Shown one piece after another: positions 5,431 through 58,169 of a DNA stretch of 64,000 bases. The stretch comes from Antechinus flavipes. Taxonomy: Eukaryota. Each line of letters opens with the position of its first letter. The first letter of the stretch is position 1. Below the pieces are notes generated by a model. The model was not told where the DNA came from. It did not search any database and saw nothing but the letters and a program-made list of their open reading frames with translations. The stretch covers positions 501,022,001 through 501,086,000 of the forward strand of contig NC_067399.1 in assembly GCF_016432865.1 (NCBI RefSeq). The letters run 5' to 3'. Both the position numbers and the translations under genes were made by a program.

Positions 5431-6722
5431 ATTGAAAAGCCCAGATAAGAGAGGTATTATAGACGCTGCATTGATCAAAGTTGATAACTGTTGGGATGTG
5501 AGGGCCAACGAGAGCAAAGAGCCTGATATCTGATTAGTTTCACAAGTCCCATCACAGCAACTCTGCCTCTTCTTATTGAACATGATCCATGATCCTTCAG
5601 TTTTGAAGGGGCAGCAAGATTTCCACTTATTTATTTCCTATTTCTTGTTAGCCATGTCAATTTGCTTGGCCATTGATTCTTTCTGTCTCTCACCCCATAA
5701 GACATCCCTGAATCTCATATGGACTTTAAAAGTTTCTGTTTCGTACTGCTAACATTAGTCTCAACATAGTTCCAGCAACCATCCATATTCTAACATGTTC
5801 TAAAGTTAGAGCCTGTCAATGGAATCAGCTCATGAATAGAAATGGAAAAGGGGTGAAGCAGTATTGAAAAGCAAAAAGCTTATATGTAAAAGCATTGTCA
5901 GGAGAATGTGAATTAGGGAGAATAGGACCTAAAAGTCTGCATTAAACCAATATTGACTGTAAGATTCTGTTGATTATATTTCTGGTCATTGACCAACTTT
6001 TTGTGTGTGAGGTATGAAGAATATAGCATTAAGGCCTCAGTTGTATTGTAACAAGTAAATAACATAAGGGCAGCATCCTGGTCTAAAGTCCTTGTTCTCT
6101 GGACAACTCAAATTAAAACCCTCATTAGTCTTTCTTGAATTGAAGTCTTTATTTCAAAGAGGGAACTTAAATCCTTCAGACTAAGAGTTTGTCTAAGTGT
6201 AGAAACATCTTTTGGTTTAATCTAATCCTTAGAGATATCTCTTTGTTCATCTTTGACCAAATTGAAAGGGAAATCTTTAGAGGAAGCGGTATAGCAAATG
6301 TTCTCTCTCAAGGTATCCTCCATTTATATCACTATGGTTTTACTTAGTAACTCTAAAACTCTTAATTTCATTTATGTGTCTTCTTTTTACTTTGCTTTGG
6401 AATTTTGTCTTTGGGTTCACAATTACTATAATTGTTCAAGGACTAGGACCATGCCTTGAATACAAATTACTCTGGCTCTCATTGAGTGACCAATAATAGA
6501 TCCCAAGCTAAGCCACACTTGGTCATAGTTTAGAGTCTAAAAAGAGATGAAAAATTGTTGATGAGACTATTCAAAGCTTGCAGGAATTATTGGATTCCTG
6601 GCACATGAACTAATAGATAATGGATTCCTTTTGGACTATTTCTAGGACTTATGGACATGTATAAATTCTCATGTTGATTCATGTTATTTGTTACATTACT
6701 ACTAGCCTGTGTTATATTGGGC

Positions 6723-50100: not shown

Positions 50101-52269
50101 ACTTGATATTTTCTCATGCTATCACCTTAGCTCCCATCTTCTCTAACTCACTACCATCCTTTTCATTTCTTCTTCTTAAACTTTATTCAGATCAATACTA
50201 CCATTGCTTTTGGAAAGAACATGTCAATTAAATGTTATTCCCCTCACCATCTCTGAGACTTTGCAAACTAAAACAACCTTTCTTAGCCACCACTTCCCCC
50301 CTTAGAATGTTACTCTTTGAAGGGCAGGGACTGTCTTCACTTTTTGATATTTATATCTCCAGTGCTTGGCATATTGTAAATATTTGCTAAGTGCTTTTTA
50401 AATACATTTATTTCAACCTTAGATTGCTCCTTGGAGAAAAGTTCATCACTGTAATCATACTCACACCATTACAGCATAAAAGATTCTGCCAGACTCCTCT
50501 AAAACCCAGGTCACCTCCTGCCACACACAGCATCAAAGCAGGACTTTAGTGGAAGCCAGTCCTCGCTGAATTATCAGATCATGGAATTTTAGAGACCCAT
50601 TTTCCTTTCTGAGCTGATCTCTACACCTCTCTCTGAAAGGCACAGTAGATACTGATTGAATGAGGGCAAGTCAATAAAGGAGTACTAATACATCTGTACT
50701 ACAATAATCACCACTGTGACCCAGAGCAAATCATTGAATCTTGACAAACCTCAGTTTCCTCACTTGTAAAATGAGAAGATTGGATTAGACGACATCTATT
50801 CAAGCGCCATATCAACAATCTTATAATACAGCTCACAAATCTATAGCACTTCACAACTAATCACAAAACACTTTCCTCACAAGCCTGAGGTAGGTAGTGT
50901 AAGTATATTATTAGTTTAATGAATGAATGAAAAAGCATTCATTAGATGCTTACTATGTGTTAATCTCAAAAGGCAAGGTGAATAATCCCTCACATTTGTA
51001 AAGTACTTTACATTTATTCTCTTGACAGGCCCTAAAATATCACATTTTGGACCTGACTTTCCTTGAATCAAAATTTTCAGCCTGTAGCACAAACTTTTGG
51101 GAGCATTTTAGGAGTTTTCAAGCCTCCTATTTCAAGATGATCACTGACTATTCCTTCCAGAAGGAGGCCTATTTTGAAAAAAAGGAAGCCTACAATCCAA
51201 GTGGCAATGTTTTTTAATATCAAGTAATTTTGTGAAACATCAATTCCTTATAAATCAGGTTTTTAAAAAATATCTTTTGAGGGAGATTTGAAAGTTCATT
51301 TTAGTCACTCAGGTTCACCCCGGAGTTTAAGAATATAAAACCTTAGCTCCCTGGGCATCCGAAATGCCAGGCACCAGCAGATCTGGCAGAAGGTAAATAT
51401 CTCCCAGATAGATTTGAAGTGTCTGGTTTTAATTTCTATTTAAGAATTATGAATTATTTTATGTAATTATTAAAACATCCAGTTATAACTTCTTGATAGA
51501 GAAATAAATTGTATAGAACAACCAATAAGATTCTGGGAAAGTCAGAAAAGCCACTGTTGTCTCCTTAACTCTATCCTGGATTTCTTTGCTGTTCTTGTTT
51601 TCTTCCTTTTAAAAAACAAGCACTACAGGATTACAAAGTACTTACTTGATTTTCACAACACCTTTTGAGGTAAGGTAATATAGTTATTAATCACCCCATT
51701 TTACAGACAAGGAAAGTGTGGCTCAAGGGGAAAGGAAGACTTACTCAAGGTCACACAGCAAGTGACAAATTTCTGTCCTGTGAATACTTCTTAAACAAGA
51801 TTTCCTAACTAAGCTAAGAATCAATACTTGGGCATAAGAAAATAGTTTAAAGAATAAAATCACATAAATCCTGTGCCTATTTCACATGACCCAAATATCA
51901 AAAGAAAACCAACTTATTTACAAAAGAGATTTGGAAATAGGAACAAGAATACTATTTGACCAAAAAGAAAAAAAAAAGGAAAACCTCACAGCTTAATGAG
52001 GTTAATCCATATCTTAAGAAAACTTGGCAGGTAACATGCAAGATCATTACATTTGAAGTTCATATGTCACATTCATAAACATACTTATTTGCAAAAAAAA
52101 AAATTAGTAATAATTTTTAAACTCTAAAAAGATTATAAAACTACACAGTCTAAAGAGATCAAAAAGAAACAAACTTTTCTTTCTGTGATATTTACACTGC
52201 ATCTTGTTCTTGACAAAAAATAAACTCTCTGCAAAAATCCCCTCCCCACCTACTCCCATTAAGTTAATA

Positions 52270-52361
52270 TCAGTATCGTCTGTTCATCTTCTTAAACTTC
52301 TCATAATGATAATCATCGGTTGCCTTTTCATTGGGGGGGCGCTTTCTATTTGGAGGAGACT
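52270..52361 (-). CDS. C9orf78: C9orf78 exon 9 (stop)
   Basis: tttaag| acceptor, KSPPNRKRPPNEKATDDYHYEKFKKMNRRY-TGA. Confidence 0.96.
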
Positions 52362-53991
52362 CTTAAAGAAAAAAAAAAGAAGAAAAATATGTCAGCCATA
52401 GCTTAAAACCGAACATCTTAGGCAACAAATATCAGCAGTTACTATGCACTTGGTTAAGGTGAAGGGAAGATGGCAATGTTCAAGTAGGAGCTTCCAGGAC
52501 AGATTCCTGTGATTTTCTTGCTAGGGGATTCCCTACAAATGAGAACTGGAGAGGAGAGTCACAGGAGATAAAAAATTCTTCTCTTTTGCCACTCTGATCA
52601 CATGCCTCTTAGAATACAGCCAAGGGAACCTCAAGGCCAATCCCACCCAGTAACAGATGTCAAGAGGACCAGGCCAAACAAGCAGACATGGATTAAATAG
52701 CATTGTTTAAGGCCAAAAATAATAGCAGTCAAAAGAGAAAGAAAATAGAAAACTATGATTTTTCTATTTAGGATAAAAGGAAAAGCCTAATAGTGCTGGG
52801 CTTTTGGAGATAAAGAAGGTAGGGCAGAGTCCCAGAGCACCTCCTTTCAGGGAACATGTTCAGGAGCAACTACCAATGGGGGCCCCTTGTCTGCTTAGTT
52901 TGCTGGGTTTTCAAGAGAAATATGCAAGATTTTGAAAGGGTTATAACAAAATCAGCCTTAGATAAAATATGCAGAACATAGTCTCTAAAAAAAATCTTGC
53001 TATTGAATGCCTTTTTCTTCTCTTTCCTGTCCTTGCCATTTGTCAAGGACTCCCCCCTAAATTCCAAAGCAAGGAAGTACAGAGACACTTGCTCTTACTC
53101 TCAGGTTCTGGCTTCTCTGTGTCTCCCACCCTGAGAGGTCGGGTTTTCGGCTCCTCTTTGTGCCTCCGAACTGGGGCGTTGAGCTCTTCATGATAAACTA
53201 ATAGGGAATAATTGAACAACAAATTCAGCAAACATTGAGAAGCACCTACTGTGTGCAGCTCACTCACAAGTTAAGGACTCCAACTATGTTCCTGCCCACA
53301 CAGTGGAACAGAAGTAAGAGAAAGGGCATTTGGCCTGGCCACTGTGGTGATCTGAGAGAGGAAGGCGGGGCCTGAGAGACACTTACATCGGTTGTGTTGC
53401 ACATAATTCACAGCCATGTTGGTGGGAACAAAAGACGTTTCACTGTCTTTCTTTTTGTTCTGTTGCTCAGCCAGTAGGCGCGCCTTGGCATCCTCTGTCG
53501 AAATGATATTTTTTATTTTTGCACTATAGGGAAGAGAAGGAAAAATCACTTTATCTTAAAATATGGGAAATTCAAAAGCAAGAGTTAAGCCTGCCACCTT
53601 CCCTTCACCCTCACCAAGTGCACAAGAGACAGAAGATCATGAATTAGAAAGAAGCTGGGGGAAGAGTTCTTTACTAAGATTTTAACCAAGTCCACATGCA
53701 GAGGAGACCTTAAAGAGAAGGTACACATCCACATAAATAATTTTTGATTAATATATTGGTTTGTTACTATCCATACTATATTGTTAAATACATGTACTTG
53801 GTTACTATATTGATTTGCATTATTTTCTCTCTTTTAAAAAACAGCTGTTTTAAGCTGAAATGAAGAGGGATGATTAAGAAGGAAACTGAACTAATTGCTA
53901 CCAATTTCACTGTTAAGAAGAAAGTCGGAGGCCTCAAGGATCAAAATGCCTTGTTGAAAGCAATATTTAAAAACACTTTTACTTTTAACCA

Positions 53992-54073
<82 letters not shown>

Positions 54074-57000
54074 TTAGACTAACTTTGTGATTTTCACTGA
54101 CATAGGGACTTCCCAGGAAACTTCCACTTCCAATGCAGACTGGTACCTGCGCTGCCACTTCTAGCTTCTGAGTTACCTGGAATACCAAAAGGTTCCTTGA
54201 TTTGCCCAGAGTAACACAGCTAGTATGGATCAAGGGCAGGACTATTAACTCTGAAACCAATTCTTATCCCACTTTACTTTTTCATGGGAGGGAAAGATGG
54301 GGAGAAAGAAAACAACTTCAAAGACTGGGTTAAAAGAAGTAAGTGCTAATCAGCTCTCCAAACCACAACTTGTTCAGGGTATTGGTCCAGAATCCTTGTT
54401 AGCCCTCTCCAATTATATTTGCTATTCTTGAAGTAGCATGGAATGAACTGGGGACATTAAATTTATTTTTTATTTTTGCAACACTCCCCTTAAGTTCTAT
54501 CTAATGTGAACTGGTCAGTCAGGTAGCAGTATATAAAAAGTTCTAGATTTGGAGTCAAGAGGGCATGAGTTCCAATTGTGTCTCAGACACTTACTAGGTT
54601 ATAACATTAGTTAAGTCAATTAACTTCTGTCTACTTTATTTCTCCCATCTGTAAAATGAAAATGAAATGAAAACAGCACCTATTTCCAAGGATTGTTGAA
54701 AGAATCAAATGAACATAAATTGGAAGGTATTTTCCAAATGTTAAAGAGATATATATGCTAGTTATTAGAATGATTATTTTTATAAATATATTATTTCTAT
54801 TGATTGAAAGGATAAAGTAAGAGAATGAAACCTACTCAATGCCTAAGTCCACCTCAGGAATGCCACTCAGCATCTGGTTGGACAGCATCTCTTCTGTTTT
54901 CTTAGCTGAGGAGACTCGGATGCTCTCGGGGAGTTCATAGAGACAGTCTTCAGCATTCTTCAACTTCACCTTCAGTTCTTCATTTTCCATAATTCCTTTT
55001 CTCTTCTTTAATTCAGTTTCAATGTATTTCATCCTAGAATATACCAAGAGACAGCAAGTAGCTTACAAGGTAGGCTCTGATTTATCACCCTTCGGTTGGT
55101 CCAGCAGAAGAAAAAAGCATATTGAGGGGATCTTCAGGAACTACAGGGTAGGTAGAAAAGGTTGGGAGAATGGAAGACAGAAAGGAAGATGATTTTGAAG
55201 CCTTCTAGAAATTCCAAAAATTTCCCTTGCTTTAGTTGGGAAATAGGACTTAGAATCCACAATAAAAAGGTAATCTGTTCACACCCTAGAGAACAAAAAC
55301 ACTTACATGTCAGCATCTTCATCTCTTCGATTGGTTTCTGCTGAAAATGATGTCCCCAAGTTGAGATCCTCCTCTTCATTAATCCTAAATGGAGATAGAA
55401 GTATCTTTAATGTTGCTTTGGGGGAAAAAAATTATTCAGTTCATTTAAAAAAAATACATTGAAGAACATTTTGTCAGTCCTTTTTTCACACCTGCTGTTT
55501 CTTCCAATCTCTCTGAGGATGTACGTGAGTCTTCCTACTACTATGAGCAATCAAAATTGAGTACATTCACAGGAAGAGAAAATGTTCTCAACAGTTTCTA
55601 AAAATGTTTTCCACCAACCTGTCCTTATTTCTTTCCTTAATTTTCTTCATGTCCACCATTCCACCAGTGTTGATATTAAAGGGATCATCCTACCAAAAAA
55701 GAATGATGATAATGAAGACCAAATATGGTTTGTAAGTTCCATGAGAGACAATGATCATTTCTTATTTGTGTTTTTTATTACCTATAGTATAATTATCAGT
55801 GTTTGAACAGTACTGAGTGCTAGACTCTAAAGCACTTAGGATTCTGAATAAGTTACATCAATAAATGTTGGTTGATGTAGGACAGATAACCTTTTTAGAG
55901 GACAACCTACTTTCTGGAGGACAAATATGCTTTACTGAACTATAAACCACACTTTTAAAACCTACTAATCTTCCAGGGTCATCCTTCCTAGCCAAATATC
56001 ATGACATTCATCAAAGATGTCAGCAAAACTCACCACTAGAGTTGTTTCTTCCTGTACTTTCTCCCCAACCAGAAGGGCTACAGCACTGGGGGAAAAATGT
56101 GGGTACAATTCAAAGACAGAAAAATATAAAGCAGTCAATTCAAAAATTCATTACCCAAGCTGACAAAAAAAAAAAAAAAAAAGCTCATGTGAATAATGGC
56201 AGCCAAAAAGGCATGTTAGGAAAGATTATGTTTAAAAAACAAAACAAAACAAACAAAAAACCAAACCAACAAGACTAAAAGTGATACTAGATTTCCAACT
56301 TTACCGGTATGTTCTTAGGATTTAGAGGTAACCTCATCCAAGACTCCATTCCCTCCCACCCAAGTCACAAAGATAAAAAGGGCCAGCACTTGAACCTAGA
56401 TCTTGTGATTCCAAATGCAGCCCTCTCTCCATGATCTTTCCAAATTGAGAGGGACTCAAAATTTCTGCCAGTTCCTTCAGTTCCACAGGATGTAAAAAAT
56501 AAGATCGTGGTATCCCTCATATTCTCTAAATAATTTTTATCATGTCATTTTCAATGCAAAGGTCATTCCCTTGGTAGAGAAAACGGAAACAAAATACACG
56601 TTAAGCACCTCTTTTGTGTACTCTGTCTACTTCTCATTCTGAACTATTGACAAATGCCTAGAAAAAGCAGGGGAAGCCAGGTGGTAGATGAAACGCCTTA
56701 GTGTACAGTTTAACAGGGAAGATAGGCTATTTCAAGTAGTTGTACATTTGTTACAGCATTACACAAAGAGGACCCAGACATACTTTTCATCTTTTCTTCT
56801 GACTGTGGTCCACAATCCAAGGTGCCGGACCTACCTCACCCCTTTAGGTCGTCTCCTCAAGCTCTGAACTTCTTTGGTTTCCTCCAGTTTCAACCTGAAG
56901 ATAACATAGAGAAATGATTAAGCAACTCAAAAATCAAAATGAAATAAGGTCTGACTGTGAGGCTCTTTCCCCAGGGATCTATATTTCCAACTAAAGACAG

Positions 57001-57933
57001 GTTAAGGAAATTTTCTTACCTGCTGTGGGACAACAGCCCCAAAGTGTAGCAGTTTTCAACCTTACCGATGTGTGTGTATCTTCATAGGAGAGGATTAGGG
57101 GAAATTTAAATGGAGTGCTAGGAATTAATTTTTGTTACACTGACAAATTAGATTTCAATATCTCTTTTATCGCCCTTCATTCTCCTCCTTTATTTCCTAT
57201 ATGTAACACTGTTCCCGTTTCTCTCAAAAGAGAGGAAGTTTAGTAAATCTCCTGAATACTATGGGATAGGATATAACATACATGTACGTCTATATATGTA
57301 AGAAGGAGAATAAGGTTCCAGGTGCCCACTTCACAGGCTCAAATGAGGTGACTCTGTGATGTAGCTGTCAGATACGACAGACACCGAGGAAAGCATGGCT
57401 ATGCTGGCGACGACATTGGGAAGAGAACACACAGTATCTACTTTAGGAATACTAGGCACCCAACACAGTTTCCTGGCGAGACAACAGGCACATGTCCTGG
57501 ATACAGAGAAAGGCAAAGCCAGAGTGTCCTCAAAGAGCTGCCATTCTCCTGCAGGGGCGGGAGGCGAGCAGAGAAACCAGGACTGGCCGGGGTACAGGGA
57601 GGAAGGACCCGGCGGCACTTGCCCAGGGCGGGCAGAGGAGACGACCACCCGGATAAAAACCAGGGAGCAAGGTATCGAACAAAAAGGCTCGCGGTTAGGG
57701 TCAAAGGGTCGGCTGCCCTCAAGTCTAGGCGGAGGTCTCCCAGGTCTGCAGGGAGCCACCCAGACCCGGGGCTCGGCAGTTTTCCGCAGGTCTTGCCCTG
57801 GGTCAGGGCTCCTCCGCACCGCAGTTCTGCCGCCCTGCACCCCGCTGCCCACTCACCGGACTTCTTCACTGTCCTCGTCCTCGTCCTCGTCCGAGTCGCC
57901 GTGGTGCTTGCGGAAGGTCTTGCCGGGCCTCAT
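52270..57933 (-). CDS. C9orf78: C9orf78 (splicing factor, HCA59/TLS1 family), 9 coding exons, 287 aa
   Basis: Exons 57933-57857, 56894-56835, 56085-56034, 55689-55619, 55384-55307, 55033-54836, 53523-53387, 53197-53099, 52361-52270 (864 nt) join in frame with GT-AG introns. Peptides RLKLEETKEVQ, DLNLGTSFSAETNRRDEDADM, VPTNMAVNYVQHNRF, EKATDDYHYEKFKKMNRRY match C9orf78. Confidence 0.97.
53099..53197 (-). CDS. C9orf78: C9orf78 exon 8
   Basis: YHEELNAPVRRHKEEPKTRPLRVGDTEKPEPE, 99 nt. Confidence 0.97.
53387..53523 (-). CDS. C9orf78: C9orf78 exon 7
   Basis: AKIKNIISTEDAKARLL...NYVQHNR, 137 nt. Confidence 0.97.
53995..54072. repeat. Perfect (GT)39 microsatellite in C9orf78 intron 6
   Basis: 78 uninterrupted bases. 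Confidence 0.97.
54836..55033 (-). CDS. C9orf78: C9orf78 exon 6
   Basis: MKYIETELKKRKG...GIPEVDLGID, 198 nt. Confidence 0.97.
55307..55384 (-). CDS. C9orf78: C9orf78 exon 5
   Basis: INEEEDLNLGTSFSAETNRRDEDADM, 78 nt. Confidence 0.96.
55619..55689 (-). CDS. C9orf78: C9orf78 exon 4
   Basis: DDPFNINTGGMVDMKKIKERNKDR, 71 nt. Confidence 0.95.
56034..56085 (-). CDS. C9orf78: C9orf78 exon 3
   Basis: AVALLVGEKVQEETTLV, 52 nt, GTG|GTGAGT donor. Confidence 0.95.
56835..56894 (-). CDS. C9orf78: C9orf78 exon 2
   Basis: LKLEETKEVQSLRRRPKGVS, 60 nt, canonical splice sites. Confidence 0.95.
57857..57933 (-). CDS. C9orf78: C9orf78 exon 1
   Basis: ACCATGA start, MRPGKTFRKHHGDSDEDEDEDSEEVR, CG|GTGAGT donor. 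Confidence 0.93.
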
Positions 57934-58169
57934 GGTCCCCCGCACCCGGGCTTCTCCCGGGGCCTGTCGCGGGGTCCCCACGGCTCTGCTTCCAGGTCTC
58001 GGACCTGCGCAGATGTTTGGGGCCGGTTCCGGCGCAGGCGAGTGCGGTCAGAGCTGCGTACGGAGTCCGCGGCTGCGGGCCCGCCTCCGGCTGCCAGGGC
58101 CGGCGCGGGGCGCTCCCCATAGGGCCGCGCGCTCGAGAGCCCGCCCTGCCCTGGCCGACCCCGCCTCTA

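Follow-up and report, generated by a model that had tools for sequence, protein, structure and literature searches.

In the window (the whole stretch of 64,000 nucleotides analysed here), the C9orf78 gene carries one arm of 34 nt in intron 6 and a second in intron 8 that are complementary to each other in the sense transcript, and we hold with moderate confidence that the two arms form a dasyurid-specific long-range pre-mRNA helix that arose from a templated insertion, has had its pairing kept by selection and may act on splicing. According to this reading, a reverse-complement copy of about 36 nt of a conserved G-rich element of intron 6 would have landed in intron 8, and the two copies would pair as a helix of 30–34 bp with about 1.1 kb looped out. 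Pairing in the sense transcript would then have been kept by selection, as suggested by changes of the G-U type in the stem lineage and, later, by two compensatory double changes.

The helix and its place in the C9orf78 gene

Nine coding exons of the C9orf78 (TLS1/HCA59) orthologue were found on the minus strand by three-frame translation, which reproduced the exon borders proposed in the sequence-only reading of this DNA (54836; 53523–53387; 53197–53099; 52361). Exon 6 (54836–55033, minus strand) ends at the donor GA/GTAGGT, so that read-through into intron 6 hits a stop codon immediately (DLGIE-stop), and it is followed by exon 7 (53387–53523, minus strand; 137 nt), exon 8 (53099–53197, minus strand; 99 nt) and the coding part of exon 9 with its stop codon (52270–52361, minus strand). 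As had been claimed, exons 7 and 8 together comprise 236 nt, and an in silico join of exon 6 to exon 9 reads ...DLGIEVSSK-stop, an out-of-frame skip product of 183 aa whose frame stops 15 nt into exon 9. Two annotated proteins of 183 aa, from a colobus monkey (P0071) and a perch (P0113), were considered as exon 7–8 skips and rejected, their common GIEYV end having the look of intron 6 read-through. Among the matches listed (15 of the 41 cluster members), the Sarcophilus isoforms are X1 and X2 (alternative first exon), neither of which is the exon 7–8 skip form. Intron 6 also contains a (CA)n microsatellite some 85 nt long (window 53990–54078), and MIR-like fragments are seen at about 54560–54700, 54190–54250 and 53230–53300, and also near 51700–51765, downstream of the gene.

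The upstream arm, arm U (53591–53624, minus strand), is purine- and G-rich and lies in intron 6, 68 nt before exon 7, and the downstream arm, arm D (52443–52476, minus strand), is pyrimidine-rich and lies in intron 8, 82 nt before exon 9; both distances to the acceptors, taken from the earlier description, agree with the exon map. When the letters of the minus (sense) strand were paired anew, the arm coordinates and the composition of the duplex held good, with 33 of 34 positions paired as 29 Watson–Crick and four G-U pairs and a single G-A opposition. On the plus strand the same arms give 29 Watson–Crick pairs and five mismatches, the four G-U pairs turning into A-C, and the claim that pairing is better on the transcribed strand is thus upheld. 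The calculated duplex energies differ in the same direction, at −58.3 kcal/mol for the sense strand in the window and −56.8 kcal/mol in Sarcophilus, against −48.9 and −47.6 kcal/mol, respectively, for the antisense strand. The helix is present in both the MFE and the centroid folds of a 1271-nt stretch of the window, and a repeat search scored the arm pair as 31 nt with 90% complementarity, 1116 nt apart. The segment of about 1.1 kb that is looped out by the helix comprises exon 7, intron 7, exon 8 and most of intron 8.

Each arm lies in or close to a conserved block. Arm U is contained in the conserved 3' block of intron 6 (53524–53690, minus strand), which corresponds to all of intron 6 in Sarcophilus, and is followed by a putative branch-point-like motif, CTTAAC (53584–53589, minus strand), that starts 2 nt 3' of the arm; the longer GCTTAAC begins 1 nt after the end of the arm, CTTA is invariant in the alignment of the five marsupials described below, and cattle have TGGCAGAGCTCTAAC at the matching place as the counterpart of CTTAAC. 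The conserved 3' block of intron 8 (52362–52429, minus strand), with a CTGAC branch-point-like motif and a pyrimidine tract, begins 13 nt downstream of arm D and about 10 nt past the insertion that carries it.

Fragments of a dispersed repeat, SINE- or MIR-like, that had come to lie in opposite orientation by chance would also give a complementary pair, and both the MIR-like fragments in the introns and the fact that most inverted repeats of the window are pairs of transposable elements (TEs) speak for such an origin. The 30-nt arm pattern, with up to three mismatches, has only two sites in the 64 kb, namely the two arms (none expected from shuffles), and none elsewhere in the five orthologous loci. 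A sensitive local BLAST search with each arm and its 150-nt flanks found no third copy and no homology outside the arms, and the homology and the complementarity end sharply at the borders of the 34 nt. Moreover, arm U is orthologous and in the same position across about 80 My of marsupial evolution, and the 36-nt insertion that carries arm D has exact borders. A TE-derived inverted repeat pair was therefore rejected within the window and the orthologous loci, and chance placement of dispersed repeats is extremely improbable; the earlier remark that the arms were not recognized as repeat-derived is borne out for the 64 kb and the five orthologous loci.

An old arm in intron 6 and a young arm in intron 8

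Orthologues were reached from the N-terminal 90 residues of a 165-aa lizard match, by way of full-length proteins and a 90% cluster to the encoding loci. Intron-containing loci were obtained from the wallaby Notamacropus eugenii (L002), Sarcophilus harrisii (L003 and L004) and the opossums Monodelphis domestica (L005) and Gracilinanus agilis (L006), which together with the window make up the five marsupials compared. Intron identity to the window is 92–93% in Sarcophilus and far lower in the remaining loci, which places the window among the dasyurids. Searches with fragment proteins, using the open reading frames of exon 7 and exon 6, returned eutherian, bird and fish fragments only, with no dasyurid and no marsupial contig among them, and a metagenome scan with the conserved flank of arm D gave no match. 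Intron 6 varies widely in length, being 168 nt in Sarcophilus (L003/L004 4659–4826), 1312 nt in the window (53524–54835), 1738 nt in the wallaby, 1195 nt in Monodelphis and 868 nt in Gracilinanus, and little more than the conserved 3' block with arm U is left of it in Sarcophilus.

The loci of Dromiciops (L001), the echidna (L008 and L010) and the Sarcophilus protein P0200 (L011/L012) were rejected as intron sources: they are intronless and therefore say nothing on introns. They have intact frames of 282–288 aa and are apparently retrocopies annotated as C9orf78. The N-terminus of the Sarcophilus retrocopy P0200 (UniRef: two Dasyuridae) is more ancestral than that of the intron-containing parent. 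In the dasyurid parent gene, the N-terminus (window 57856–57935) is diverged and acidic, reading MRPGKTFRKHHGDSDEDEDED..., and that of the wallaby and opossum proteins (P0203/P0207) reads MRAGK.FRKRR.DSESESDEQD...; the diverged dasyurid segment falls inside the BRR2-binding region of the human protein.

The two arms differ greatly in age. The 3' end of intron 6, about 170 nt long and inclusive of arm U, can be aligned across the five marsupials (mean column identity 72%), and orthologues of arm U are found in the same position in Sarcophilus, the wallaby, Monodelphis and Gracilinanus. In Monodelphis (L005, about 6330–6360) the G-rich core of the arm has grown to a run of about 25 G. In the alignment of intron 8, arm D is present in the window and Sarcophilus only and is missing from the wallaby, Monodelphis and Gracilinanus. 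In pairwise alignments with long-gap scoring, the wallaby and Gracilinanus each show a single gap of 35–36 nt whose position coincides exactly with arm D, the sequence on either side being aligned, and in the window the inserted segment of about 36 nt relative to the wallaby and the opossums (52440–52475, minus strand) is a reverse-complement copy of arm U. Sequence from close by has thus been copied in reverse complement to a site where the outgroups have nothing, as is characteristic of a templated insertion. Judged from these alignments, one insertion in the dasyurid lineage is more parsimonious than two identical deletions, and arm D is most likely a template-switch or templated-repair insertion copied from arm U. 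The insertion would have taken place after the split from the wallaby lineage and before the split between the window species and Sarcophilus. Opposite position U28 the insert has T, the complement of the outgroup A, and the copying therefore came before the A>G change in arm U.

A conserved partner of arm U was also sought in the outgroups. In intron 8 of the wallaby, Monodelphis and Gracilinanus, the best partner of arm U pairs no better than the shuffled-arm background, whereas in both dasyurids the U–D helix lies about 9 SD past that background, and a conserved partner in the outgroup introns was rejected. The duplex is not conserved across marsupials: with arm U in five marsupials and arm D in two, both arms are not conserved across distant species as they are in structures of the PCCR type, and the duplex is thus new to one lineage instead of being a switch of long standing.

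Substitutions in the arms of two dasyurids

In Sarcophilus, the arms form 28 Watson–Crick and four G-U pairs, with two mismatches near one end and 30 contiguous pairs; folding of 1333 nt places the helix in the MFE structure, and 30 bp of it have pair probabilities close to 1. The spacing from arm to splice site, 68 and 82 nt, is identical to that in the window, and the arm sequences are identical in both Sarcophilus assemblies. Between the window and Sarcophilus, seven of the 68 arm positions differ, as against 70 of 1022 in the flanking intron (transitions to transversions 53:17). The arms are thus not slow-evolving, which indicates that the pairing has been kept and not the sequence.

Four of the seven differences make up two compensatory pairs: at U5/D30 (53620/52447) the window has C-G where Sarcophilus has U-A, and at U20/D15 (53605/52462) the window has A-U where Sarcophilus has G-C. 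From the states of arm U in the outgroups, T at U5 and G at U20 are ancestral, which places both double changes in the lineage of the window. The other differences are at D22, where A in the window gives the G-A mismatch and Sarcophilus has C, and at two adjacent positions in Sarcophilus, where the changes disrupt the pairing of U31 and U32. Protection of the helix is imperfect, as seen from the internal G-A mismatch in the window and the terminal mismatches, two in number, in Sarcophilus. The two species have the four G-U pairs in common, which are therefore older than their split; these pairs go back to a single A>G substitution on the side of arm U and, it appears, to C>T substitutions on the side of arm D. 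The polarized local spectrum (A>G 8, T>C 6, C>T 13, G>A 14) has no strand bias favouring G-U.

A neutral simulation, simple and ignoring template switching between the arms, gave at least two covarying pairs with P = 8e-4, or with P = 0.002 given seven differences, and conditioning on an intact window helix, which allows for the way in which this case was picked, gave P = 2e-4 to 9e-4. These values bear on the reading of the pair as a neutral relic, in which a templated inverted insertion gave two complementary arms whose helix has not decayed and has no selected effect on splicing. Inverted repeats are indeed common in the window, with 47 pairs of at least 28 nt within 5 kb, the arms evolve at least as fast as the flanking intron, mismatches are present in both species, and a window helix of at least 33/34 is not improbable under neutrality if the helix was intact at the species split (P = 0.44–0.63). 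We nevertheless regard a relic as unlikely, given the two compensatory double changes (neutral P about 0.001–0.002), a stem lineage in which the inferred changes are only of the G-U type and none is disruptive, and the survival of both helices through 11 inferred substitutions, for which the neutral P of about 0.009 is low, though not extreme.

Repeated template switching or gene conversion between the arms would mimic compensation without selection on RNA, and such concerted evolution has some plausibility in that template switching is a known source of hairpins and a proposed means of their maintenance (PMC8794818), and in that the insertion itself resembles a template-switch event. The compensated pairs are, however, flanked and separated by sites that are mismatched at the DNA level and have not been homogenized (U2/D33, U13/D22, U15/D20 and U28/D7), so that two tracts of less than about 12 nt would be needed, acting across 1.1 kb on 34 nt of homology; the events covered in PMC8794818 have distances of up to 8 bp between source and target, compared with the 1.1 kb between the arms. 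Concerted evolution is accordingly given a low probability, below that of a relic.

Still less probable is a function at the level of DNA or protein binding, with a duplicated G-rich motif, such as an intronic enhancer of the hnRNP H/F type or a transcription-factor site, of which each copy is kept separately. Arm U is rich in G-runs, is conserved in all of the marsupials compared and is expanded to poly-G in Monodelphis, as such a site might be, but the transcript of arm D is the C/U-rich complement and not a G-run, and independent sites predict conservation of sequence and not complementary covariation.

The best reading of the substitutions is that selection has probably acted on RNA pairing in the sense strand; both arms are present in two species only, and the covariation therefore amounts to two events in a single lineage. 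The earlier proposal of selected RNA pairing is thus supported by the two compensatory double substitutions relative to Sarcophilus; across marsupials at large the duplex is not conserved. Likewise, the proposed comparison of orthologous introns for compensatory changes yielded two within the dasyurids, with arm D missing in the wallaby and the opossums.

Predicted effects on splicing and relation to known structures

Of the possible effects of a selected dasyurid helix, the most likely would be on splicing of the exon 7–8 segment. By bringing the exon 8 donor to the exon 7 acceptor, the helix would favour a 236-nt circle of exons 7 and 8, and by drawing the donor of exon 6 close to the acceptor of exon 9 it would favour the skip form of 183 aa with its shifted frame. 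The helix may in addition cover the stretch immediately 5' of the branch site of intron 6, where 34 bp of duplex beside the branch-point-like motif could hinder the anchoring of U2 snRNP on intron 6, and it may compete with local pairing of arm U to the pyrimidine tract of exon 7. In four of the five species, arm U is predicted to fold into a local hairpin with the pyrimidine tract and 3' splice site of exon 7. This hairpin does not surpass shuffled sequences (z from −0.01 to −2.1) and has no covarying pairs, and on these two grounds it was rejected as a selected structure and retained as a possible competitor only. The kinetics call for some caution: transcription reaches arm D about 1.1 kb after arm U, and intron 6, which in Sarcophilus has a length of only 168 nt, may be spliced before the helix forms.

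Judged from its sequence features, the putative U–D pair belongs with the long-range intronic complementary pairs, both those associated with circRNAs (ICS) and those of the PCCR type. In reporters, inverted repeats of 30–40 nt suffice for circularization (Liang & Wilusz 2014, PMC4201285), and G-U wobbles lowered its yield (PMC4201285). Similarly to these repeats, complementary arms of about 30–40 nt flank the looped exons of C9orf78 near splice sites, with arms in both flanking introns (6 and 8) and a stable duplex of 34 positions in the MFE and centroid folds, and a downstream donor is brought to an upstream acceptor; in contrast to them, the C9orf78 arms are not derived from Alu or SINE elements, are known here as genomic sequence and form a helix that holds four G-U pairs. 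The structures of the PCCR catalogue (PMC8052449), ATE1 (PMC7797038) and Drosophila (PMC2724269) resemble the present helix in that an intronic long-range helix loops out exons, compensatory substitutions keep pairs (here in two species only) and one arm lies in a conserved intronic block, whereas one of the C9orf78 arms is a young lineage-specific insertion and the structure is conserved within dasyurids only. Stems formed by template switching (PMC8794818), including those of de novo miRNAs (PMC10710096), share the one-step reverse-complement copy, the sharp borders and the absence from outgroups, but in C9orf78 the source and target are 1.1 kb apart in different introns and form a long-range bridge, not a local hairpin.

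Autoregulation of C9orf78 through the duplex is imaginable by analogy with the known activity of the protein. In human cells, knock-down of C9ORF78 alters exon skipping and the choice of 3' splice site, and the fission-yeast homologue Tls1 promotes 3' splice sites distant from the branch point (PMC9508853). Human BRR2 is bound by residues 5–58 of C9orf78 (PMC8894380), which are kept in the skip product, so that the truncated protein would still be expected to bind BRR2. In its most speculative form, to which we assign only a slight chance, the helix would be a newly evolved autoregulatory sensor in which the level of C9orf78 decides whether the duplex beside the branch site of intron 6 becomes resolved, the outcome being either the full-length mRNA or else the 183-aa truncated form, BRR2-binding and escaping NMD, or the exon 7–8 circle; an intact intronless dasyurid retrocopy could buffer the gene. 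If this were true, a single templated insertion of 36 nt could build a feedback loop in a core splicing factor.

The birth and upkeep of a long-range RNA structure can here be read from five genomes, in the source, the empty site, the borders, and the G-U and compensatory steps, and the helix lies in the gene of a core spliceosome factor, around exons whose loss truncates the protein. The wallaby and the opossums, which naturally have only one of the arms, are suited to a comparison of gain and loss of the helix. If the dasyurid helix is functional, it would mean that lineage-specific regulation of splicing can come from one small templated insertion, without a transposon.
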